A stretch of 63,233 nucleotides of DNA, filler included, from Octopus bimaculoides (Eukaryota): the NCBI RefSeq assembly GCF_001194135.2. It is 9 parts of 7 records of this genome, joined end to end, with 100 filler letters (N's around TTAATTAATTAA, not from the genome) between each part and the next. Parts side by side here need not be neighbours in the genome. Positions count along the whole stretch, not along the records: positions 7,577 to 22,730 come from NC_069010.1; 8 more parts are not named here. One strand, written 5' to 3'. The position numbers and the translations under genes are program-made. The notes beneath the pieces were generated by a model. It did not search any database, was not told the DNA's origin, and was given only the letters and a program-made list of their open reading frames with translations. Below are positions 7,477 through 22,830 of the stretch, piece after piece. The number at the start of each line of letters is the position of its first letter. Position 1 is the stretch's first letter.

Positions 7477-7749
7477 NNNNNNNNNNNNNNNNNNNNNNNN
7501 NNNNNNNNNNNNNNNNNNNNTTAATTAATTAANNNNNNNNNNNNNNNNNNNNNNNNNNNNNNNNNNNNNNNNNNNNTATATATATATATATATATTGATA
7601 GAAAGGACAACAAAAGAAAGAAAGATGCCTCGATATTATGTAAATAGAGGAATTTATCTGTAAAAATATGTGACACTTATTCGGTAGCCATGATAAAACT
7701 TCGAGTTTCGGATGCCGGGCTGGGAACTTATACCTAGTAGAGAATAGCA

Positions 7750-10256
7750 CATATTAACGACTCCTACATAACAGTATCATCAACAGTTACACCAAGGCTA
7801 CGCCATAAACCTATAACGATATTAATAAAAAAAGCTAGCAATATCGCCGCCAGACTCAAATTAGATAAAAAAAAGTAGAGGTCCTCCTCCAAAAAAAGGC
7901 CTTTATAACTATCAAAGACCATAAAAAGAACTTCCTATGTAGTCCTAAGTGTAGGCTTATTAACCCTGCTAAATCAGAACTTGGCATTATTAGTAAAGAA
8001 ACTTTAGGGAAAATCAATGCGGAAGTCAGGAATGCCACTAGGTTAATACAATGATCCAATAGTATAGAAGTCGTCAACCGGTTTAAAGCTATGAAGAATA
8101 AGAATAAATCAAGATTCACCCAGTTCGATATTGTCGATTTTATGCCTCTATCTCTAAGGAACTGCTAGATAAAGCTCTTACCTTCGCAAGCAGATTCATA
8201 AAAATCAGCACACATAGAAGTCAGCACACAGATAAAGACATAATATTCCATGCTAGAAAGACTTTACTCTTCAGCGAGAACGCAGAGTGGGTGAAGACAA
8301 CCGATAGAGAGGCTGCTTTCGATGCGAGCATGGGGTCATGTGATCGAGCAGACATATGCGATCTTATTGGATTATTCCTACTCGATACGTTGGGCAAGAC
8401 TTTTCCTAACGGACACTTCACAATTTATAAAGATGATGTCCTAGCTTTAACCGCTAATACCAATGGACCAGCACAGGATCGGTTCAGGAAGTATACTATC
8501 CATTTGATGAAAACCTTCGGTCTTAGCATCTCTACAGATAGCAACCTGACGGTTGTCAATTACCTAGCTGTGTCCCTAGATCTAAATAAGTATATTTATA
8601 AACCTTATAAGAAGCACAACGATAGACTTAGTTACATCATTGTGGGTTCCTGCCATCCCCCCATAGTGTTTAAAAATTTACTTAAAAACATTAGTAAAAG
8701 AATCTCTAGCCTCTCCTCTGATAGGGACATTTTTAATAGCGTTGCCCCAGTATATAATAAGGCTGTAAAAGATAGTGGTTTTAACGAGGGAATAACCTAT
8801 ACACCTGCCACCAGTCCAGTAACAAAGAGAAGAAAGCATAGGAATAAGAAAACCATCTGGTTCACACCCACTTACTCACCCGAAGTGACCTTTAATATAG
8901 GCAAGTACTTCTTCGCACTTATAGACAGACATTTTTGTAGTTAACCATAATTATACAAAGATCCTTCAACAGACATAACTTGAAAATAAGTTTCAACTCA
9001 ACTGCTAATTTTAAGAACATAATCGCACACGACACACAAAAGCCGCAATATGAAACCAGCTGTTAATGCAGAGATAAAAATTTGTGCCCGCTAAACGGAG
9101 TTTGCATGTCCGAAACCATGAGGCCACCGTGGACTCTATATCCACTAAGGACACAGTTTCGACGAAGATATACGTGGGCCTCACGGAGGGTAATTTCAAG
9201 GCCAGATTCAATAATCACATTTTGAGTTTCAGGCACTGGGACAAAAGGAAAACGACCAAATTATCCAGTAATATGTTGTCTTTAAAAGATAAAGGTGTCA
9301 GTTATAACATCCATTGGAAGATCTTAGCGAAGTGTAAACCTTACACCAGCGGCAGCGGAAGGTGCGGTCTATTTGATATGGAAAGATGGCTCATCTGGAA
9401 AGGCATCAAAGACTGAACTTTTCGGATCATGTCCACATGTGGCCAAATATTTGCTACGGTTTTGGTCCCCTTGAGTTTACTGATAGGACTTGCTTTCTAT
9501 ATTGTGTCTATGCATAAGCTTTTTATCTCTCTATACTTTTTACTTAGATTTCTTATATATCTTTATATTTTTACTGATAAGACTTGCTGATAGGACTGTA
9601 CTGATAGGATTTGATGCATAAGCTTTTTATCCTTCTATACTTTTTACTTGGAATTTTTATAATTTATTTATATTTTTTAATATATTTTAATAATGTTTAC
9701 ATAATTATGGAGTTAATGTTTTTTTCTATTTTTTTCTGTTTTTTCCCCTCGACCCCGTTTTTTCCTGTAGGTCTATAGACACGTACATGGAACCTTATGT
9801 GCGCGCTTGTGAATGTGTGCGTGTGTGCGGGTACGTGCGTATATATATATATGTGTATGCATATGAAAATATGCGCATATTAGACGCGTTTTAACCTTAT
9901 AACTTTTTCACACTTTCTTCTGTTTATGCTTTTAGCCCTATAATTTTTTTGCGTGCATGTGTATGGGTGCGAGGTGGATGTGTGCGTGTGTGTGGGTGTT
10001 TATGCGGGTATATATATGTATATGTACATATATGTATAGCTTTTGGCGAGTATGTGGGTGAGCATGTATGTGTTTCAAGCGAGGGTGGTTTAGTATAGGC
10101 GAATGTACGGATTGGTGCGCTTACGTGAACACTATAGACATTTCTACTCCCTTTACTTAGCGGTCTATTAGTTCTTTGGTCTTAATTGGCGGTCAAACAC
10201 ACAGTAATTTCCCTTTGTTTTAACGGTCATCTTTCACAGGAATTTTCATTGGCAGG
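7750..10256 (+). mobile_element. Decayed but near-complete Penelope-like element (Naiad-type): RT then GIY-YIG endonuclease, with 3' UTR
   Basis: Conceptual translation across frameshifts: AFITIKDHKKNF..PKCRLINPAKSELG, FTQFDIVDF, FDASMGSCDRADICDLIGLFLL, IYKDDVLA, YKPYKKHND..YI..GSCHPP, C*CRDKNLCPLNGVC, IYVGLTEGNFKARFNNHILSF, IHWKILAKCKPYTSGSGRCGL. Confidence 0.88.
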
Positions 10257-10739
10257 NNNNNNNNNNNNNNNNNNNNNNNNNNNNNNNNNNNNNNNNNNNN
10301 NNNNNNNNNNNNNNNNNNNNNNNNNNNNNNNNNNNNNNNNNNNNNNNNNNNNNNNNNNNNNNNNNNNNNNNNNNNNNNNNNNNNNNNNNNNNNNNNNNNN
10401 NNNNNNNNNNNNNNNNNNNNNNNNNNNNNNNNNNNNNNNNNNNNNNNNNNNNNNNNNNNNNNNNNNNNNNNNNNNNNNNNNNNNNNNNNNNNNNNNNNNN
10501 NNNNNNNNNNNNNNNNNNNNNNNNNNNNNNNNNNNNNNNNNNNNNNNNNNNNNNNNNNNNNNNNNNNNNNNNNNNNNNNNNNNNNNNNNNNNNNNNNNNN
10601 NNNNNNNNNNNNNNNNNNNNNNNNNNNNNNNNNNNNNNNNNNNNNNNNNNNNNNNNNNNNNNNNNNNNNNNNNNNNNNNNNNNNNNNNNNNNNNNNNNNN
10701 NNNNNNNNNNNNNAGTGCATAACTTTAAGAATCATATTC

Positions 10740-11522
10740 AAAGCTCATAAATCAATGTTCACCTTTTGGTAAAAGATATATACTGGGTACCTATAAATTG
10801 ACTTTACAATTTGAACAATTTCGAAGAAAATGAAGAATAAAGAGAGCTCATCAAACTTTATTGGAAATCATTGGCAAACAAATATCAGAAGCATTAGAAC
10901 ACTTCGACGTGGATTCAATTGTCACATACCAATTTTACGTCGCTAAAAGCCACACTGCTTTTGCCTTGGTTGATTCTTTTAAATGGGATTTTCACTAAAA
11001 GAGTCTTCCCCGTGAAGACATTCTTTGAAATCTGATTAATCTACACATTTTCTCTGAAAATAAATGAGATACTTTGATTCAAAGTCACGTTTTCGCCTTA
11101 CGCTGCTATTTTTGACCTCACATACTTTGACATAACTGCTTTAAAGAATCAATTTCCAATTATTTTAGCACCAAATGTAGCTTACAACTCGATCATCATT
11201 GCCAAAACGATGAAATTAATTAGGTTGAGAACTGAATTACTAATTAAATCATGTAATAGAAGTAGAAGAGTTGCACTCTGTTGTTCACAGTCTCTAAGTG
11301 AAGATCAGTAACAAGGACGGGGAGTCTATTGTTGGGGTGCCTAGTGGGATAATCTATAGTCACCTTGATACTGTGGGGGATGGAGTTGGCTACTTGCTGG
11401 ATGCTCTCCATTATGTTCCTCTCAGTTTCTACATTACCGTTACTAGAGAAGGTCTTAACTATGATATGAATGTCATCTACATACCTACTGTATATCAAAC
11501 ACTGTGGCTTAAGATTAACAGG
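10740..11522 (-). mobile_element. Degenerate Penelope-like reverse transcriptase fragment
   Basis: ORF 11244..11789 segment YSRYVDDIHII...IKVTIDYPTRHPNNRLPVL = RT YxDD motif plus downstream PLE-type motif; stops and frameshifts further 3'. Confidence 0.55.
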
Positions 11523-11743
11523 NNNNNNNNNNNNNNNNNNNNNNNNNNNNNNNNNNNNNNNNNNNNNNNNNNNNNNNNNNNNNNNNNNNNNNNNNNNNNN
11601 NNNNNNNNNNNNNNNNNNNNNNTATGCATGGATATGTTGGTAGAAAGTTCCGAGATGATAGTAACATTGATGTTGTTGAAATTCCAATGATGGGGCCGTA
11701 GATGTAGGAAATAACAGTGAATAATAACATACATGCATAATAC

Positions 11744-11778
<35 letters not shown>

Positions 11779-12266
11779 CATATATACATGCATTACCGTG
11801 TGTTTATTTGTAAAAAGGACCATATTAGTGATCATATTTTTTATTGTTTATCCAAATATTGTTTTGCTTAGTTCACATATTATGGCCTTTTTCAACATAA
11901 CTTAAATGAAGTTCTCAGGTTTTATAAGGGAGTTCCCACGGCAACAATGCTTGCAAGTTTCGAATTTCATCCCTTTATTTGACTTTTTCAACGATTTTCA
12001 CATATTTGTTACATCAGAATACTAAAAGGACAACAAGTAGCGTTAATGCTTCTCTCAGTTGAATTTGTGACAATTGAAGCATTTCCAAATGAACATAAAA
12101 ATAGTTTTATAGTCCTTGTTAATAATTTGGTTTATATGTCTAACATGTATTGATTCCATTGCAAACACGTATTAATTCTTTTACATCAGAAAGAAAATAT
12201 TTCTTGTTATTGCTATGCATTGCATTATTTGGTTCATAAATACAGATATTTACTTGTATTCTGTAG

Positions 12267-12358
12267 ATTACTCGTTATTTCAAAGGAATTTACAGTGTCA
12301 AACATGTTCAGGAATGATGTGCAATGATTCAGAAGTGGAAAGCTGTCCAGGATCAGAG
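12267..12358 (+). CDS. Exon 1 of a Ly6/uPAR (three-finger)-like Cys-rich domain
   Basis: Acceptor tattctgtag|, donor GAG|gtaaac; 92 nt, phase 1 to 0; xYSLFQRNLQCQTCSGMMCNDSEVESCPGSE (CxxC start typical of LU domains). Confidence 0.75.
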
Positions 12359-14540
12359 GTAAACTGGAATATTACTTTCTTCCTTTCCGTTAAAATATAT
12401 CCACAGCCGTCACTCGAAAACCATTAAGACCACATTGTANNNNNNNNNNNNNNNNNNNNNNNNNNNNNNNNNNNNNNNNNNNNNNNNNNNNNNNNNNNNN
12501 NNNNNNNNNNNNNNNNNNNNNNNNNNNNNNNNNNNNNNNNNNNNNNNNNNNNNNNNNNNNNNNNNNNNNNNNNNNNNNNNNNNNNNNNNNNNNNNNNNNN
12601 NNNNNNNNNNNNNNNNNNNNNNNNNNNNNNNNNNNNNNNNNNNNNNNNNNNNNNNNNNNNNNNNNNNNNNNNNNNNNNNNNNNNNNNNNNNNNNNNNNNN
12701 NNNNNNNNNNNNNNNNNNNNNNNNNNNNNNNNNNNNNNNNNNNNNNNNNNNNNNNNNNNNNNNNNNNNNNNNNNNNNNNNNNNNNNNNNNNNNNNNNNNN
12801 NNNNNNNNNNNNNNNNNNNNNNNNNNNNNNNNNNNNNNNNNNNNNNNNNNNNNNNNNNNNNNNNNNNNNNNNNNNNNNNNNNNNNNNNNNNNNNNNNNNN
12901 NNNNNNNNNNNNNNNNNNNNNNNNNNNNNNNNNNNNNNNNNNNNNNNNNNNNNNNNNNNNNNNNNNNNNNNNNNNNNNNNNNNNNNNNNNNNNNNNNNNN
13001 NNNNNNNNNNNNNNNNNNNNNNNNNNNNNNNNNNNNNNNNNNNNNNNNNNNNNNNNNNNNNNNNNNNNNNNNNNNNNNNNNNNNNNNNNNNNNNNNNNNN
13101 NNNNNNNNNNNNNNNNNNNNNNNNNNNNNNNNNNNNNNNNNNNNNNNNNNNNNNNNNNNNNNNNNNNNNNNNNNNNNNNNNNNNNNNNNNNNNNNNNNNN
13201 NNNNNNNNNNNNNNNNNNNNNNNNNNNNNNNNNNNNNNNNNNNNNNNNNNNNNNNNNNNNNNNNNNNNNNNNNNNNNNNNNNNNNNNNNNNNNNNNNNNN
13301 NNNNNNNNNNNNNNNNNNNNNNNNNNNNNNNNNNNNNNNNNNNNNNNNNNNNNNNNNNNNNNNNNNNNNNNNNNNNNNNNNNATAATCTGATATACGAGA
13401 ATATAGGAGAATAGAGCGTGACATAAGAGCATGGCTGCATTCTGTTGTCTGTTTTATTGTCTGTCCTGCTTTCAGATCTTTCTGTTTTCTTGAAGCTGAC
13501 TTAGCTTATTTAAAGATTCAGTCATTTGCAATCACCGACTCCATTGCCTTTTTTGAAGACTCCAGTCCATTGGTTATTTTTCATGACATCCTCACTCAGT
13601 TTGAGAAATCCAATTTTCTATCTAAAATTTTTTCGAGATTGAAAGAAACGAGTTTCAATTTCAAATTAAGGCAACACATATCTTATTTCTAACTCCAATG
13701 TCTACATTTTCATTGCTTTTATTGTTGTTAGGTGTTTGCGATTATTAATTGCGTTTTCGTGATGGATTCCTTTCTTTAAATATTCTTCTCCACTTCTGAT
13801 ATTTTTCGTTTTCAGAATGTCCCTTATTAAGTTAACAAGTTTGTTGGGGGTCCGATGATACAGTTAGATCTTGGTTATTTTCTCTCCAAATTTTATACTA
13901 GAATATCGTATTTTCATATAAAATATTATTGCAAAATAAAACGAAGATTCTCTTGTGTTCATTTTATGTATTTTCTGTTTTATTTGCTTGGACTGAGGAG
14001 TTTAATCTGACCATTTTATTTCATTATTATCTTTGGTTAGGGGCGTATTAGTTTCTGTTGTTGGTGAGTTTTGCACGCGTGATTTTTCGTAAATTTTATA
14101 TGAAAAATTCCTCTTGTGCATTCCTCCAGTAAGAAGAAATTATAGCGAATTGATACATCTTTATTGGGGTAATTTGACCTATTTTAAGTTTGGCGACGGG
14201 TAACAGTGCGATGCAGTTTTGATATAGACCGTGATCCGATGGCCATATCTACATTTGATCAGAGAACTTTGGACACTAAGCATTTAAAACATTATTTTTG
14301 AATGCTAAATAGCAATAAAATTTTCAGAAGTTTACCTCTGCTGTTAACTTTCAACAATTCGGCAAGTCGTTTTCGGTTTCATTTATTGGTTTTGGATATT
14401 TTACAGCAAGGATTAAATTTTCTTGCATGGTAAACATCCCCAGTGATGCTGTTTCTGTTGTTTTTGTTGTTGTAATTAGCAATAATCGTACTAATAAATA
14501 GTTTGGTTGTAGTGTATAATTTTCAAATCTATTATTACAG

Positions 14541-14724
14541 CCAGTATGCCGATTCGCATTATCAATGAACGGTGTTAAACTGAAGACTGAAAAGTCCTGC
14601 AGCACATACAGCAAATGTGTTGAAGCTATGAGAAACAATGCCCTTACATGCAACAAATGGACCAAAAGCAGGTTTTGTGTTGGTTGTTGCGTCGGACACT
14701 TATGTAACAAGAATGATTTCATTG
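14541..14724 (+). CDS. Exon 2 of the Ly6/uPAR-like domain
   Basis: Acceptor attattacag|, donor TTG|gtaagt; 184 nt, phase 0 to 1, in frame with 12267-12358; PVCRFALSMNGVKLKTEKSCSTYSKCVEAMRNNALTCNKWTKSRFCVGCCVGHLCNKNDFI ends with the diagnostic CCxxxLCN. Confidence 0.82.
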
Positions 14725-14914
14725 GTAAGTGTTATTCATTGTCTAATATAACACCACCAGGTTTATTACAAATTGATAGTCAATAAGAACATTGTATAAT
14801 AGTTAATATAAGGGAAATATTTTGATGTGTGTATACGTGTGTGCATGTGTGTATATATATGTGTGTGCGTATGCACATGCTGGCGTGCACACACACATCC
14901 GTATCTGTATGTAT

Positions 14915-14950
<36 letters not shown>

Positions 14951-14954
14951 AAAA

Positions 14955-16100
14955 CGAATTGGAATTCGTATTAGAAGGGCTAAATGTCCTCTTGGGGAAT
15001 AGCTTCTTTGTCTTCAGAGACAACTCCTATAATTCTTTGGCATGAAAGTATAGAAAGATTTAAAGGATTTGAAGCTCTTATAAATGGACTTGTTATAGAC
15101 ATTCAATTTCCGATGGAATATAGTTATCAACAACTTCCAGTCCTCGACATCCTCATTAAGAAATACAACATCAAAATAGAAACAGATATATATTATAATC
15201 CCACGGACTCCAAGCAATATCTACTGAATGAATATCCCCTTCAACCTAGCAAAAAGGATTTGTACTATAATCTCTAATACAAACACCGGGGACACTAATT
15301 GATATAGGCTTTGAATGTGCACTACAACTCAACATCCCCGAACTCAGACATCCCAAATTAAAGAAGGATTTACAGCCAAAGCCGTATCATACATCTCCAC
15401 ACATGACTCCCTTAACAATAAAACTTTGAACACAATCCTCCAGAACATTTACCAACTACGAATGGATCACAGAATGAATTTTATCCTCCAAACGCACACC
15501 ATCATAAAGAGCGAAAGACAACCAAAATGTATGAAATGTTTCATAATACAAGCTCAAGTACATTCGACATCACACTGTAGCCGTCAGTAAAAAGTGCAGA
15601 TGATCTAACTATGGTATATGCGTCAACGTAGTTGAGGGATAGGAGTTCTCTTTCAAACAGGCTCAACGATTTACAGTGAAGAACAACATCACATTTGCTT
15701 CGGAAAACCTAATATATGCATTAACTTGCTCATGGTGTCGAGAACAATACATAGGCCAAACCAAAAATTGTCTACACCAGAGGAATACCCTACACAGATC
15801 CCAGATTAAAATTCGAGAATACAGAAAAATAGCATTCAGTGAACACATTGACATTTGCACCACTAATGAACAACNNNNNNNNNNNNNNNNNNNNNNNNNN
15901 NNNNNNNNNNNNNNNNNNNNNNNNNNNNNNNNNNNNNNNNNNNNNNNNNNNNNNNNNNNNNNNNNNNNNNNNNNCTTCTGCAACCACTACACGTCTACAA
16001 CATTGCAAGTAACATAATATCTAAAACTACCAGTACCATACACTACCATTATCTCATACATAAGCAACCATTGGGGTTTCTACGTCGGTCAACTAATTAT
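14955..16100 (+). mobile_element. Decayed Penelope-like element (Neptune-type) RT C-terminus and GIY-YIG endonuclease
   Basis: QFPMEYSYQQLPVLDILIKK..IETDIYYNPTDSKQYLL (RT thumb region); NLIYALTCSWCREQYIGQTKNCLHQRNTLHRSQIK (GIY-YIG with internal CxxC). Confidence 0.8.
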
Positions 16101-16459
16101 TGGTCTATTCAGTAATTTCCTACTTTCTGCCTCAATTGCTTTCTTGTCTTGGGATCGCAGTGACATACAAACAGAAGTATTTTGTACAAAATTCTGTTTA
16201 TCCTATTATTTCAACCAATGACATCATGTTCTACTATTTATTCCTGAAACGTTTTGTAACAAACATACATACATAGAACCAAATACACCCGCGTACTCCC
16301 TTAGCTACACAGAATTACACATGATGGTGTATATAGATGAAACTTGCAAATGATCAGAAAAATAATGCAGTCATTTGTATGAAGGTAAGTTCTAATTATC
16401 ATGTTATATTGCTCATCTTTTTTATACATACATACACACACATATATACACACATATAT

Positions 16460-16502
<43 letters not shown>

Positions 16503-16685
16503 CATACATACATACACATATATATACAAAAAATTAATACGAAGTATATAATTTTTAATGCATTATTACAGTATTGGCTATTACTATAGGTAAAGCGACA
16601 CGCTGTAACGAGACGCTAAGGTCAAACTACTTCATCAAATATACACACGCACGAAATTCGAGGGAATGAACCAAGGAGAGATTCC

Positions 16686-16745
16686 TATCTATCTAAGTAG
16701 CTAGATAAATAGATAGAAAGATAGGCAGACAGACAGACAGACAGG

Positions 16746-16787
<42 letters not shown>

Positions 16788-16809
16788 TATAGATAGATAT
16801 ATAGATAGA

Positions 16810-16841
<32 letters not shown>

Positions 16842-16858
16842 GAGACAGAGAGACAGAC

Positions 16859-16909
<51 letters not shown>

Positions 16910-16920
16910 GAGACAGACAA

Positions 16921-16976
<56 letters not shown>

Positions 16977-17030
16977 GTAGATAGATAGATAGTATACATA
17001 CAGACAGGTAGATAGATACATACATAGACG
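16686..17030. repeat. (TAGA)n/(CAGA)n tetranucleotide microsatellite
   Basis: Direct inspection; source of the spurious YLSI ORFs. Confidence 0.95.
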
Positions 17031-17138
17031 TCTTGTCTTACTTTACATGACAATAAACGTAATTATATTCCTTTCTTATGTATTTTATCAATTTGGCTGT
17101 TTCGAACGAGAGAGAGTAATCATGAGAACGTTTTGTAC

Positions 17139-17310
17139 CATTGTGCTTCCTTCTGTTTCATTAGTTCCGTATGAAACACCATAGAAAAGACCATCGAAAG
17201 TGTCCCTATTCACTTTGGCAACACCAATAGCAAGATTAGAATATATAGCTGTGACTTGCTGCTCTTCCAGCGGAATCTTTTCTGGGATTGCTTCTATAAT
17301 GTTCAGCAAT
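17139..17310 (-). CDS. Adhesion GPCR exon, GAIN domain
   Basis: Acceptor ttctcacag|, donor ATG|gtacaa; 172 nt, phase 2 to 0; (R)LLNIIEAIPEKIPLEEQQVTAIYSNLAIGVAKVNRDTFDGLFYGVSYGTNETEGSTM; in frame with 18486-18717. Confidence 0.8.
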
Positions 17311-17523
17311 CTGTGAGAAAATCAAGAAAATGACTTTCAATTAACAATGTGTTTCGAATACGTAATTAGCTTTAGGTGTAATTACACTAATTATTTTGGT
17401 TAACAAATTTGTGCATGCTACTGTTGCTTCTAATACTTCTGTTGTTGTTAGGTTAGTGTTGATAGAGCAAATTTATTATCTACGCCGTTGCAAATATGTC
17501 CGCGGGATCTATTGCTATTACTT

Positions 17524-17650
17524 TTCTTCTTCTTCTTCTTCTTCTTCTTCTTCTTCTTCTTCTTCTTCTTCTTCTTCTTCTTCTTCTTCTTCTTCTTGCT
17601 GTTGTTGTTGTTGTTGTTATTATTATTATCATTATTATTATTATTATTAT
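17524..17650. repeat. Compound (TTC)n-(TTG)n-(TTA)n microsatellite
   Basis: Direct inspection. Confidence 0.95.
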
Positions 17651-18200
17651 TGAGTGAGAGAGGAGTGTATGCCATCAAAGTGACACTGGGGTAAAATATA
17701 CGAAGCCCATTATACCCTTCATGACTACCCGTCTGATAAGGGTACACCAGGCACATGCATCACAACCATATGTACGCAACATGGAGATCTCATATCAAGA
17801 TAAACAGTGCATGACCTCGCAGGTGGGGCCCAGTTAGAATTTTATTCAGGTCAAGTAGCCCATCCTGCTCAAATGGTCCCTGAATAAGGTTTGTTTAAGG
17901 ATGTTGAGCAAAACACCCATGTTTCCAAAGGTGAATTCTTCAAACCCAAAAGAATTTCTCTCAACACATGGCTATGGTGCTCCCCCACTACTTCTGCTCA
18001 TGATCAGAGATAAACACATCGTCAGCCACCAAGGGACATGTTCAACTGGTTAAGGTCAAGCAACTGACAAGCAAATTTGTGGTATTGAGCAGAATATTTG
18101 CTGTAACCCATCTTTTATACCAAGACAAAACAATGTACATGATAACACTTCCAATCAGTTAAAATCAGAAGCCACTGCCTGGTACTGCATCCGGGCCTTA
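17651..18200. mobile_element. Unclassified ~540-bp interspersed repeat flanked by (ATT)n, probably a LINE 3' end or SINE read on the - strand
   Basis: Colinear near-identical copy at 48840-49385 and partial copy at 45510-45720 (ATGCCATCAAAGTGACACTG...GACCTCGCAGGTGGGGCCCAG...GCCACTGCCTGGTACTGCATCC). Confidence 0.8.
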
Positions 18201-18369
18201 TTATTATTATTATAATTATTATTATTTTATGTTTGACTTTTGTTTTGCATTTGTACAAGTTGGATCCAAGTCTCACCCAGAGACCTCAAAAGACAACAAG
18301 TTAGAAATTCATGTAGGTGTTATGCCTAGGGTACCATATATTTGGATTTGTACCGTTTTGTTCTAGTGA

Positions 18370-18463
<94 letters not shown>

Positions 18464-18485
18464 TCAAAAGCAATTTGAATATTAC

Positions 18486-18717
18486 CTGTTGGCACTTCTA
18501 TTCTCTTGTTCTGCCTCGGCTAGAACCTCCTCTGTTATGGTTAACAAATTGTTGATACTACGAAGAGTGTTGTTCAAAGTTAAATTGGCCGACACTTTCG
18601 ATATAAATGGCACCATTTTCTCATGAATGTCTACAGCCAGTTCAACATCTTCTTCTTTGAAATACTCTGATTTCTGTGATATGTCTAAAACCTCCTTCGA
18701 AATATTGTTGATGTTTC
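18486..18717 (-). CDS. Adhesion GPCR exon, helical GAIN subdomain A
   Basis: Acceptor ttccattgcag|, donor AAG-like ACAG|gtaata; 232 nt, phase 1 to 2; GNINNISKEVLDISQKSEYFKEEDVELAVDIHEKMVPFISKVSANLTLNNTLRSINNLLTITEEVLAEAEQENRSANR; absent from the ORF track, found by reading the - strand. Confidence 0.85.
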
Positions 18718-20004
18718 CTGCAATGGAAAATTTAACATGAAATTTAAGGGAATTACAATTGCTATGAGTCGAAGTATAAGATGCAAATTAAGAGTCACAA
18801 CAATTAATGAATCACCGGAAGTTAATTAATAACTCCTACTCCAAATATCACGAAGATTGCTGAATGTGTTCAGTGTATCAGTTGTATACTCATTGTTATA
18901 CATCCTTAGTGTCCCCTGCTCTGTAGCATTAACTGGAGTAGTCAGGGAGCTACACAGTACTATGGAACCCTTTATTGTTGAGCAAAACAGACACTTGATG
19001 GGTGTTGTATATCATTGACATCCAATGAACTGTAAAACACTAGCCATCATAAACAACCATTAACACCAATGAAATTATTTTCCAATCACAAGGTGAATCT
19101 AGACAAATCGGGTCACTGCTCTAAGGAATAATACAGGTTTCAAATATTGGCACGTGACCAGCATATTCGGTGAAGGGGTTAAGTTGATTACATTGACCTA
19201 GTGCTCAACTGGCGCTTATATTATCGACACAGAAATGATGAAAATCAAAATCAATCTCGGCAGAATTTGAGCTCAGAACGTAAAAAATTACGAAGGACTG
19301 CTAAGCATTTCCCGGTCTGCTAACCATTCTGCCAGTTCACCGCCTAATTGAAGGATTAATATTGATAAGTTTTTATGACGGTCTAATGAGAAATTGAGAT
19401 CATCATATCATTAAATGCATATGAAAGTCTATTCAATTTTACAGTGCCATAACATTTGAGAGAAGTATATTGCTTATATTCTATGACAAACAGACATGTA
19501 GGGTACGTCATTGAATATTTGAATATTCTACAACTACCCTTCCAACGTAGTGTATGCACAGATGTGTGTACCAGTAATATCCCTGATGTTTTTCTGCTTC
19601 TCTATCTGCTCAAACTGTCTGCAGAATGTGTATGAAAACGTGGTTTTAACGATATTACAATAATAAACTCAACTCTCCAAAGTAATACATTCTTTCATAA
19701 TGTTTCCATAAGTGAGTCAAATGATTTGCCGTTGAACGAGATGGACACATTCCTGGAGAACCCAAACGGGAAAATACGGCGCATCACCTTTTCATAGATC
19801 ATTGTAATTACAAATACAACCACACACATACAAATAAACACAGAGAGAATGGTCAGAATGGAATAGACATAGAAAGACACATACATACACAATCACAGAC
19901 CCCACCAGAGTGGTCGTAATTAAACAGACACTCTCAAACATACTTCTTCTCATCCTGCTACTTCTACTACTGCAAAAGCTATTCAAAAACATTTGTTCGC
20001 TCAC

Positions 20005-20174
20005 CTTCATCAATGTCTTCACTTTCGATATCCTTTAGTCCTTGAGTGATCTGTTCTGTATTGTAACATTGAGACATGTTTGCCTCTTGCCAGATACCAG
20101 TAAACGGTGAACAGTTTTGTGATGACATGTTTTGACTTGATGTCATTTCTGGATGTCCCACCGTTTTGGGAGAA
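20005..20174 (-). CDS. Adhesion GPCR exon, end of HormR domain and start of GAIN
   Basis: Acceptor tattttttcag|, donor GAAG|gtgagc; 170 nt, phase 2 to 1; (C)SPKTVGHPEMTSSQNMSSQNCSPFTGIWQEANMSQCYNTEQITQGLKDIESEDIDE contains the G.W....S.C HormR signature. Confidence 0.85.
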
Positions 20175-21118
20175 CTGAAAAAATAAATGTTAAATATTGC
20201 TAGTCGAGTTTATTCATTCTTAGCGGAATTTCATCAATCGCAAAGGAATATAAGAAACCTTCGATCTGGTTGTGATTTGAACTCATAATTTAGTGAAAGA
20301 AGGATAAATGGTGTAATGCAATTTGGGGAGAAATCTATTATTTACTCCTGATCCTTTTCTTCAAAACTAATGTCAAATATATTCTAACTAGAGTTCAGAT
20401 ATAAAAACAATATTCCTGCATCTGCTTTTATTTACAATAATTAGTTGATTTTATGATTATTCAATACAATATTGGATGGAATGGTATATGTGATGCAATT
20501 TTAAAGAATTAGGTTGTTAGTTCAAGTTGAATGGGGGAATCAGTTGCTAATATTTCGCCATCAAAGACATCCGTAGCAACATAGCAACAGCGGCACTAAT
20601 GGGTTTATGTATATTTCTCTACATATGCACAGATTTGCGTAATTCCTTCAAGTGATCTTATCTTAAAACTAATAAAGCTCAGTCTCTGAGAGGAACGATT
20701 TGGATGCTTAACCTGTGGAATAACGTGGTAGAAATGACAGAAGGCTGACCGTATTTCGTACTCTGTGCTGAATCAAATCCCAGGATGACCAACATATACT
20801 AGCAAGATATATAGCTCTACAGTAATACTAAAATTGAATAAATAATATTTGAACTCAGAATATAAAAACGAATGGAATGAAAGCTTTGTATAATATTGGC
20901 GACAAAGCAAATCAAGGTAGTTAGGAAAAGGCTAAATTATATCAGATAATGTATAAAATGTAAAAATACTGGGACAAGAGATTGCAACCGATGCACATTT
21001 GATTCTATCGTGTTAACCCATCTAGCTGTTATTTACGCTACCAAGTAACATTCTCTCACAATAGGATGGCGCTGAAAAACTTCAAAATTTGAGTAGAAAT
21101 AAATCAAAATAAACCAAC

Positions 21119-21233
21119 CAGTATCTTGTTGCTACATGTGCATGACATGGGATCTCTGCAGTAGTTCCTATTTTTGTCATTGGCCAATAGAAAGTTCGAT
21201 TGTAAGCTGATGTTGTGCTTTCATCACAAACCA
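21119..21233 (-). CDS. Adhesion GPCR exon, hormone-receptor (HormR/HRM) domain
   Basis: Acceptor tttcttattcag|, donor CTG|gttggt; 115 nt, phase 1 to 2; VCDESTTSAYNRTFYWPMTKIGTTAEIPCHAHVATRY(C) matches the C......WP.T..G....PC....TR.C pattern. Confidence 0.85.
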
Positions 21234-21274
21234 CTGAATAAGAAACAAAACATGGATATGAGAAGCCAATAGGA

Positions 21275-21300
21275 AGCAGCAGCAGCAGCAGCAGCAGCAT

Positions 21301-21337
<37 letters not shown>

Positions 21338-21510
21338 GGTGGTGGTGGTGGTCTTGGTGGTGGTAGTGGTAGTGGTGGTCATGGTGGTGGTAGTAGTAGT
21401 AGTGGTGGTTGTGTTGTTGATGGTGGTGACAGTGGTGGTATTGATGATGTTGGTGTTGGTAATGGAGTTGGTGGTAGTAGTAGTAGCAATAGCTGTAGCA
21501 GCAGCCGTTG
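21275..21510. repeat. Cryptic trinucleotide repeat (GCA)n-(GTA)n-(GTG)n-(GTT)n
   Basis: Direct inspection; reads poly-Thr/Ala on the - strand. Confidence 0.9.
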
Positions 21511-21989
21511 CTATTGTAAATAAATAGCTTGGACGTGCTGGCTGATTTGAGAATAATGTGTCATAAAGTGTTACAAACACATATGGAGAGCGATATACTC
21601 TTACGCTATCAAAAATATTCAAAATATTTTAGATCGGACATTTTCTAAATATTATTCCTCGTGAGGCAAGCCAGGCGTGACCTTAACACCGATCTAGTAA
21701 TCATTTCGCTCGAAAGTGGTTCACTATAAACTTTCCATGATATGTAAGGAAATAAATATTTACTTCCCTACTGAGATATGTACAAAGTATGGACATGTAT
21801 GGCAGTGACATACAGGAAGTCATTGAAAGAGGTCGATGCTGATTGAAGAAGGATGAAGTGAGTTTGGTTTTCTGGATAAGAAATGCTTCATTTGGAGATA
21901 ATTTGAGCTCATCATTTTTTGAGAATATAACTGAGAATCAAAGGTCTTGGTCTATATCACCAGAAATAACAATTTTAAAGACGTTTATA

Positions 21990-22725
21990 TTCATATATGA
22001 CCCACGACGGTGCTACAGACTCGCATCGCAACTCACAATACAAACGTCAACATACTGCATGACCCTCTATTATCTCCCTTTTCACCACATTACCAGGAAT
22101 CCTTCGAAAAATTCCAAGGACAATAAACATAGCTTGTGTCGGGAATAGAAGCTATATATAAAATCCTACAAAACTGGTTANNNNNNNNNNATCTTATATA
22201 TATATATTCTGCGGCAGCAGAATTCGGCATTTGGGGTATTTACTTCTTCGAAGAGGACAGTATTACAGTCACTGTGAACTCTGATCGATATTGTGTAATG
22301 CTAAAGACTTTTCTGAAACCTATATTTCATGAGCTTGACGATAGGGACAGTGTTTGGTTTCAATGTTTGGTTTCAACAGCCCACACTTCTCGACGTGTGA
22401 TGGGCATTTTGAGGGACATGTTGCCCGGTCATTTGATCTCATTGCGCAATGACATCGGTTAGCCGAACAACTAATTTGAACCCGTGCGATATTTTTTTGT
22501 GGGGATATATGAAATCAGAGGTATACACCCATCGTCCTCGATTTATTGAACAATTAAAAGATGCCACTCGTCAAGAAATTGATGACATTCCACTTAAAAT
22601 GACCATTCGAATTATGGACAACTTTCGTGAATGCCTTCGACAGTGTGTGGACAGGAAAGGTTCCCTCGTGACTGATTTAATTTTAAAATCAATTGAAACA
22701 AATGAAACATTTCCAAAATAAGAAC
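21990..22725 (+). mobile_element. Degenerate Tc1/mariner-superfamily transposase
   Basis: GIYFFEEDSITVTVNSDRYCVML, VWFQ..STAHTSRR, LNPCDIFLWGYMKSEVY..PRFIEQLKDA, NFRECLRQCVDRKG; frameshifted. Confidence 0.85.
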
Positions 22726-22830
22726 ACATTNNNNNNNNNNNNNNNNNNNNNNNNNNNNNNNNNNNNNNNNNNNNTTAATTAATTAANNNNNNNNNNNNNN
22801 NNNNNNNNNNNNNNNNNNNNNNNNNNNNNN

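Follow-up and report, generated by a model that had tools for sequence, protein, structure and literature searches.

Which gene, or genes, do the convergent exons at positions 12267–21233 belong to? The window considered here is a stretch of 63,233 nucleotides (nt), filler included, from Octopus bimaculoides (assembly GCF_001194135.2), and the piece of interest, positions 7577–22730, comes from NC_069010.1. Two plus-strand exons encode a peptide resembling a Ly6/uPAR (LU, three-finger) domain. Facing them on the minus strand are exons of an adhesion G-protein-coupled receptor (GPCR) encoding a HormR domain and subdomain A of a GAIN domain. We read both units as pieces of one octopus adhesion-GPCR family, set face to face by the misplacement or misorientation of a scaffold and not by the nesting of one gene within another; to this reading we give a probability of about 0.62. 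On the homology evidence, a scaffolding artefact is the most likely cause of the convergent arrangement.

The LU unit itself is well formed. Its two exons (Table 1) are bounded by canonical splice sites (acceptor ttctgtag/AT and donor AG/gtaaac for exon 1; ttattacag/CC and TG/gtaagt for exon 2), and the unit is in phase 1 at entry and at exit. The spliced product, YSLFQRNLQCQTC...CCVGHLCNKNDFI, comprises 91 amino acids (aa) with 12 cysteines and ends in CCVGHLCN. An earlier interpretation made without database searches (the sequence-only reading) had spliced two plus-strand exons into a 12-Cys LU-like domain ending in phase 1 (G), and its exons, frames and phases are confirmed. Exon 1 is 100% identical in nucleotide sequence to positions 9954–10045 of L001, a paralogous O. 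bimaculoides locus (CM046630.1), with 89% identity in the flanking intron; exon 2 shares 180 of its 184 nucleotides. Together, 272 of 276 nt are identical (two of the four differences are synonymous) and the introns differ by 5–11%. Furthermore, the boundaries of exon 2 match those of the O. bimaculoides gene for XP_052827273.1 (L007 27280–27468). The intron separating the two exons contains a gap of 943 N. Since both L001 (10126 to 10776) and the Octopus sinensis locus L002 (7999 to 8744) carry the gap flanks in the same order and on the same strand, with an ungapped interval of ~650–745 bp, the continuity of the exons is supported, and by this comparison the join is sound. For the LU unit, neither a signal-peptide exon nor a glycosylphosphatidylinositol (GPI) exon was found in this piece, as the sequence-only reading had also stated. 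Reading through the donor at 14724 yields GKCYSLSNITPPGLLQIDSQ and then an in-frame stop 20 codons on; this 20-aa tail is not hydrophobic and is not a GPI signal.

Several lines of evidence bear on the fold of the peptide. Its cysteines are spaced 2, 4, 7, 6, 16, 5, 10, 8, 2, 0 and 4 residues apart, with the framework including the C-terminal CCxxxxCN. In an alignment of ten family members, ten of the 12 cysteine columns show no variation, and the remaining two are conserved in nine sequences. A profile of ten family LU segments matches human LYPD1/Lynx2 (PDB 6zss) over the full domain with the cysteines in register (E 0.008). An AlphaFold model of the window peptide is of moderate confidence (pLDDT 67, pTM 0.56); in a Foldseek search with this model, the top 50 PDB matches are all three-finger proteins, with Lynx2 in first place (TM 0.62/0.65), followed by uPAR, Prod1, the ectodomains of TGF-beta and activin receptors, snake toxins, CD59 and PSCA. 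Structure prediction and Pfam had both been proposed as checks: the former returns the three-finger fold, and the latter gives no match for the window LU peptide alone at E up to 1. Among relatives the Pfam matches are weak. Activin_recp and Toxin_TOLIP, which are three-finger families, each match three of ten sequences (best E 7e-4 and E 0.016, respectively), and UPAR_LY6_2 reaches only E 1.2. On its cysteine pattern and predicted fold, we accept the window peptide as an LU-type domain.

The relatives of this peptide are receptors. A word-indexed search with the LU peptide returned four octopus proteins, the best of them (O. bimaculoides LOC106873717) being 97% identical, and in all four the LU sequence continues into GWTNSFVFRLIFKKF... 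In the O. sinensis model LOC115226146, the end of LU is followed by ~95 aa of this sequence and then by FCDEST..., the HormR domain. An exhaustive HMMER search yielded 23 relatives, including proteins of 1010–1283 aa which carry LRR_8, GPS and 7tm_2 above the Pfam cut-offs. RefSeq and UniProt name relatives from O. bimaculoides and Octopus vulgaris 'adhesion G-protein coupled receptor G6', 'A3' or 'GPR126-like'. The relative P0034 comes from a 4201-nt intronless contig of run SRR21372857 whose uninterrupted 1155-aa open reading frame (ORF) spans the entire architecture, and it therefore provides transcript-level evidence for the whole; its alignment with the O. bimaculoides protein runs end to end, LU included, at 37% identity. 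The order in the family is signal peptide, LRRNT and leucine-rich repeats (LRRs), LRRCT, LU, a SEA-like module of ~95 aa, HormR, GAIN/GPS and the seven-transmembrane (7TM) domain, and the exon upstream of LU exon 1 is an LRRCT exon in all relatives. The closest solved structures over GAIN and 7TM are ADGRG2 and ADGRG6 (E 1e-65 to 1e-68), and the HormR region of P0032 aligns to the GPR126 HormR-GAIN structure 6v55. Judged by these alignments, LU is a constant ectodomain module of full-length LRR-LU-SEA-like-HormR-GAIN-7TM octopus receptors, and the family is the octopus-specific 'group 3' adhesion-GPCR expansion, closest to ADGRG6/G2. The continuation of LU relatives into HormR, GAIN and 7TM had been suggested as a check, and it is found here in full-length octopus receptors. 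We regard it as reasonably probable that a cephalopod adhesion-GPCR family built from LRR, LRRCT, LU, SEA-like, HormR, GAIN and 7TM has conserved LU as a module of its ectodomain, one that had not been reported before.

The module between LU and HormR is encoded by three exons in all relatives. AlphaFold predicts it confidently (pLDDT 88) with a beta-alpha-beta-beta-alpha-beta topology. Foldseek retrieves only generic ferredoxin-like folds, Pfam SEA matches one of eight members (E 0.007) and a profile search of the PDB with this module gave no match. Because neither sequence nor fold searches single out SEA, we call it SEA-like only: it occupies the position of the SEA domain in GPR126, and its identity as SEA is unproven. 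This module also decides the fate of a fusion that the sequence-only reading had drawn, in which LU would be spliced directly to HormR as LCNKNDFI-V-VCDEST. The two frames do fit arithmetically, but this follows only from the phase 1 common to all these domain exons; the join is not native, as no relative has it and the SEA-like module always intervenes. Relatives usually have M (A+TG) as the codon that spans the junction into HormR. With its initial TG, the HormR exon of the window would form this M codon too, provided that the exon before it has A as its last base.

The minus-strand unit comprises two HormR and two GAIN subdomain-A exons (Table 1). The phase-1 start (TG) reported earlier for the first HormR exon is borne out. 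The encoded sequence, VCDEST...WPMTKIG...PC...ATRYC...CSPFTGIWQ...C, displays the HormR cysteine/tryptophan pattern C..W..C..WP.T..G...PC....A.R.C...G.W....C; Pfam HRM matches it with E 9e-4 and 20.1 bits, below the curated cut-off of 26.2. The GAIN exons encode the helical first half of the domain, and the second of them shows 89% aa identity to O. bimaculoides A0A0L8I5U9 (P0005). All six receptor exons in the window, two each for LU, HormR and GAIN-A, are intact with usable splice sites. Searches with tblastn for LRRCT, SEA-like, GAIN-B, 7TM and tail exons on both strands of 7577–22730 found none at E up to 1. GAIN-B/GPS and 7TM are hence absent from this piece; in relatives that share these exons, GPS and 7tm_2 both pass the Pfam cut-offs. 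In a collection of 5.8 billion sequences, no annotated protein matches either unit exactly, the best being 97% and 72% identical.

Table 1. Features of the piece 7577–22730 (window coordinates) and of related octopus loci (coordinates of each locus)
Feature	Position	Strand	Remarks
100-N gap, left edge of LU island	11523-11622	.	N run
LU island, 4.25 kb, between two 100-N gaps	11623-15874	+	homologous edge to edge to paralogue L001
LU (three-finger) exon 1	12267-12358	+	in phase 1, out phase 0; encodes (D)YSLFQRNLQCQTCSGMMCNDSEVESCPGSE
Gap within LU intron	12440-13382	.	continuity supported by L001 and L002
LU exon 2	14541-14724	+	out phase 1 (last base G); encodes PVCRF...CCVGHLCNKNDFI
Penelope-like retroelement fragment, GIY-YIG endonuclease ORF, cut by gap	14984-15874	+	weak Pfam GIY-YIG, E 4e-4
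100-N gap, meeting point of + LU unit and - receptor unit	15875-15974	.	homology of both sides stops at its edges
Receptor intron sequence, not transposon	15975-16254	-	88.9% identity to L004 17686-17415
GAIN subdomain-A exon 2	17310-17139	-	RLLNIIEAIPEKIPLEEQQV...GTNETEGSTM; acceptor cag, donor ATG/gtacaa
GAIN subdomain-A exon 1	18717-18486	-	GNINNISKEVLDISQKS...EQENRSANR
HormR exon 2	20174-20005	-	C-SPKTVGHPEM...CSPFTGIWQEANMSQC...IDEG; in phase 2, out phase 1
HormR exon 1	21233-21119	-	x-VCDESTTSAYNRTFYWPMTKIGTTAEIPCHAHVATRY-C; in phase 1 (starts TG), out phase 2
L002 (O. sinensis, gap-free)	LRRCT 5026; LU exon 1 7836; LU exon 2 9876	one strand	
L002, continued	SEA-like exons 11540, 12699, 14670; HormR exons 1/2 16599, 18352	same strand	
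L004 (O. vulgaris)	GAIN-A exons 1/2 12202, 13357	one strand	preceded by last SEA-like exon
L004, continued	GAIN-B exons from 17790; 7TM from 35063	same strand	
L007 (O. bimaculoides)		one strand	72-kb gene for XP_052827273.1; all modules; exon boundaries as in the window

In related loci, the modules that face each other in the window follow one another on one strand (Table 1). In L001, SEA-like exons lie on the same strand as LU, and there are no antisense receptor exons within 24 kb downstream of LU exon 2. The sequence-only reading had proposed that the LU exons are displaced N-terminal exons of the same receptor family. In substance this stands, as LU occurs in full-length receptors; its details do not, since LRR and LRRCT lie upstream of LU and the SEA-like module lies between LU and HormR.

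The loci compared also differ among themselves. The L004 gene lacks both HormR exons, and the window stretch that begins before HormR exon 1 aligns there immediately beside GAIN-A exon 1 (L004 11274–12130 against window 18787–22121). This agrees with the O. vulgaris models P0009 and P0020, which pass from the SEA-like module straight to GAIN; HormR is thus dispensable or lost in some family members. HormR is passed over in some O. vulgaris models, the SEA-like module in none. In O. sinensis, LU exon 2 of L002 (9876–10031) carries in-frame stops, and HormR is followed by further SEA-like exons, a second set that ends in a short terminal exon ...AETNF* (L002 19469–24317; L003 23143–29201). The same AETNF tail terminates one O. 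vulgaris model that contains a 7TM domain. Short O. sinensis models from this degenerate cluster (LOC115226146, LOC115226217 and LOC115226165) are probably secreted or non-functional.

The point at which the two units meet is where the arrangement becomes doubtful. The piece is split by N runs at 10257–10713, 11523–11622, 12440–13382, 15875–15974 and 22181–22190. In blastn comparisons with L001, positions 11623–12439, 13388–14771 and 14912–15874 match at 87–95% identity, and this homology spans exactly the interval between the two 100-N gaps; the neighbouring sequences, 10714–11522 and 15975–22180, show no match to L001 beyond simple repeats. On the right-hand side, the O. vulgaris match of the first post-gap stretch (15975–16254) stops 104 nt short of GAIN-B exon 1 (L004 17790–17936). 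The minus-strand unit therefore enters the gap ~100 nt before its next expected exon; the plus-strand unit enters it inside a transposon, before its SEA-like exons. It had been argued that this transposon, then called a Neptune element, appears to continue across 15874–15974 in one orientation, weakly in favour of a real arrangement. In L001 the ORF of the Penelope-like element extends ~105 nt past the point matching 15874. Nonetheless, when the 300 nt after the gap and both ends of the right-hand block were compared in both orientations with this continuation, the local alignment scores were 19–22 (21 for the post-gap sequence), at the level of shuffled controls (mean 20.8 +/- 2.5). The post-gap sequence is receptor intron, the transposon does not continue across the gap and the argument from continuity fails. 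The Penelope-like fragment is 87% identical to L001 12381–13346; being common to both paralogues, the insertion is older than that duplication.

The gap sizes are consistent with a scaffolding origin. Gaps of 100 N make up none of 13 in L001 and one of 15 in L007, other O. bimaculoides gaps being mostly individual estimates, and in the long-read loci L003 and L005, scaffolded with Hi-C, every gap is 100 N. The two 100-N gaps would then be unsized scaffold joins. Hi-C is unable to set the order or orientation of a piece as small as 4.25 kb. The interval 11623–15874 may accordingly represent a 4.25-kb draft scaffold dropped, misplaced or misoriented, into a cluster of near-identical genes when a short-read draft was ordered with Hi-C. 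The chromosome assembly of O. bimaculoides was produced by adding Hi-C data to an earlier shotgun draft (PMC9068888). The plus-strand exons would represent the LU module of one gene copy, and the minus-strand exons HormR and the first half of GAIN from the same or a neighbouring copy. Judged by where homology ends, the junction at 15875–15974 is untrustworthy.

Some observations weigh against this account. The artefact is deduced rather than demonstrated by reads or read pairs spanning the gaps. Contigs are often broken where duplicated segments end, such that after a real segmental rearrangement, too, homology would be expected to end at gaps. For the domain itself, confidence in the LU model is moderate only and Pfam's own LU models stay below threshold. 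Finally, the gap-free, long-read O. sinensis cluster holds real partial and degenerate duplicates, with a stop-bearing LU exon 2 and duplicated SEA-like exons. This last point lends some credit to a less probable explanation, which is the main and a serious rival and in which a real inversion or segmental duplication in a tandem cluster has left a 5' LU fragment on the plus strand facing a HormR/GAIN-A fragment on the minus strand, at least one of them a truncated pseudogene. The deletion of the HormR exons from O. vulgaris L004 also speaks for it, and the lack of an exactly matching annotated protein for either unit would fit unannotated pseudogene fragments. Yet all six exons are intact, the LU exons are better conserved than their introns (89–95% identity), and a breakpoint would have to fall within ~100 nt of unread sequence at both ends of the island.

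An artefact of another form, which we consider improbable, would invert the block from 15975 onward instead of the island: LU, SEA-like, HormR and GAIN would form a single plus-strand gene with the three SEA-like exons inside the gap. Flipping the block does restore the family order LU, HormR, GAIN-A, and both units resemble the single O. sinensis loci L002 and L003 to about the same degree (85–88% in nucleotides); in these loci, 6.5 kb separates LU from HormR. An in-place inversion alone, however, restores collinearity only if the SEA-like exons are hidden in the gap, which would have to conceal ~4–5 kb, and, with L004 as a guide, one expects the last SEA-like exon over 1 kb past 22121, on the far side of the block. 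Moreover, a 10-N gap ties this block to sequence further right, so that unlike the LU island it is not a small free contig. The second possibility put forward by the sequence-only reading, a stand-alone Ly6/uPAR gene nested antisense in a GPCR intron and encoding a small secreted or GPI-anchored three-finger protein, is rejected as very improbable. Short LU-only models do exist, for example a 151-aa O. sinensis 'ly6/PLAUR domain-containing protein 1-like' and a 195-aa O. vulgaris hypothetical protein, and the in-frame stop shortly beyond LU exon 2 might close such a protein. But these models begin inside the LRRCT exon, have no signal peptide and end by intron read-through (GKCYLLSNITLTSLLQIDS, GKRCLFSYIR), which marks them as fragments of receptor genes. 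The piece 7577–22730 contains no signal, GPI or terminal exon to complete such a gene, and the read-through tail lacks the hydrophobicity of an anchor. In addition, the intron phases on both flanks of LU agree with those of receptor domain exons, and the equivalent introns of O. vulgaris (L004 and L005) have no LU exons on either strand. Under the preferred reading of misplaced pieces of one receptor family, the head-on picture of an LU gene against a GPCR should not be read as biology, because it depends on an unsized join between scaffolds within a repetitive cluster of genes.

How do these receptors relate to known systems? To our knowledge, three-finger domains are outside the usual list of adhesion-GPCR modules. 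A search of an open-access literature subset for adhesion GPCRs bearing LU, three-finger or uPAR domains brought up no relevant paper, which is absence of evidence only. The receptors themselves were described by Ritschard et al. (2019) as octopus group 3, class-B receptors of O. bimaculoides with GPS, 7TM, LRR in some and one Death domain; their genes are co-localised in clusters, show positive selection and have enriched expression within the axial nerve cord, suckers and skin (PMC6408891). These are the same proteins as ours, and the Death-domain member is P0031 here. The LU and SEA-like modules are not in that study (PMC6408891), since standard domain hidden Markov models miss both. What is new is only the recognition of these two modules, the receptor expansion being already known. 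In P0031 (XP_014788728.1, O. bimaculoides), the Death domain (residues 1203–1277, Pfam E 3e-6) follows the 7TM domain at the C-terminus and is preceded by a long (STSQQ)n-like low-complexity tail.

The ADGRG6/GPR126 ectodomain 6v55 matches the octopus HormR and GAIN with E 4e-22. The membrane-proximal order SEA, HormR, GAIN, 7TM of GPR126 recurs in the octopus family, with the SEA-like module at the place of SEA; towards the N-terminus, GPR126 has CUB and pentraxin domains whereas the octopus receptors have LRR, LRRCT and LU. ADGRA2/3 (GPR124/125) share with the octopus receptors N-terminal LRR and LRRCT, one small disulphide-rich or beta domain, HormR, GAIN and 7TM. In ADGRA receptors an Ig domain occupies the position of the octopus LU and SEA-like modules. 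Some octopus members are named ADGRA3 in RefSeq, and precomputed Pfam GAIN_ADGRA3 matches exist, but in 7TM and GAIN sequence the family stands nearer to ADGRG than to ADGRA receptors. With Ly6/uPAR proteins such as LYPD1/Lynx2, the octopus domain has in common the 12-Cys pattern with CCxxxxCN, the predicted three-finger fold and a split over two exons with phase-1 introns at both ends. It differs in its setting: it lies within a large receptor of many domains and does not form a small protein, secreted or GPI-anchored, by itself.

In other proteins, LU domains bind to receptors, for example nicotinic acetylcholine receptors. In the octopus family, LU could serve as an extra ligand-binding or adhesion module on the N-terminal receptor fragment, upstream of the GAIN autoproteolysis site. 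If LU is indeed a conserved module of this family, it would be a three-finger ligand, or a binding unit, tethered to a GPCR. The family is lineage-specific and tandemly expanded, and positive selection on it has been reported in sensory and neural arm tissues, which makes its N-terminal modules natural candidates for studies of ligand binding. For annotation, ~90 aa (LU) and ~95 aa (SEA-like) of ectodomain which are blank in standard domain searches can now be named. The LRR region has its own peculiarity: in L007 (6601–19198) each 24-residue repeat is on its own 72-nt exon, with 5–7 kb between successive ones. Such a layout eases changes in repeat number through exon duplication, and the LRR count varies widely among family members.

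Further repeats lie in the piece. A second, different Penelope-like copy lies at 7900–9420 (+) with a weak GIY-YIG match (E 0.005), and a reverse-transcriptase fragment with a YVDD motif (11244–11522, minus strand) adjoins the gap at 11523. An interspersed repeat of ~175 nt at 19173–19345 has many copies in both orientations in L002–L005 of O. sinensis and O. vulgaris (74–77% identity); an ARAGORN tRNA scan for a short interspersed element (SINE) origin found no tRNA-like part. The ORF at 22449–22721 has no Pfam match and falls within an interspersed repeat at the right end of the piece (22366–22730), which is 88% identical, in reverse orientation, to L001 36027–36374 at the end of that locus. 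Long microsatellites of the types (GATA)n, (CTT)n/(ATT)n, (ATT)n/(ACT)n and mixed (CAG/TAG/TGG)n occupy the receptor introns at 16690–17000, 17520–17650, 18365–18465 and 21280–21500 and are the source of many spurious long ORFs in a mechanical ORF list. A similar trinucleotide-rich stretch occurs in O. vulgaris just past the position equivalent to the contig break at 15975.

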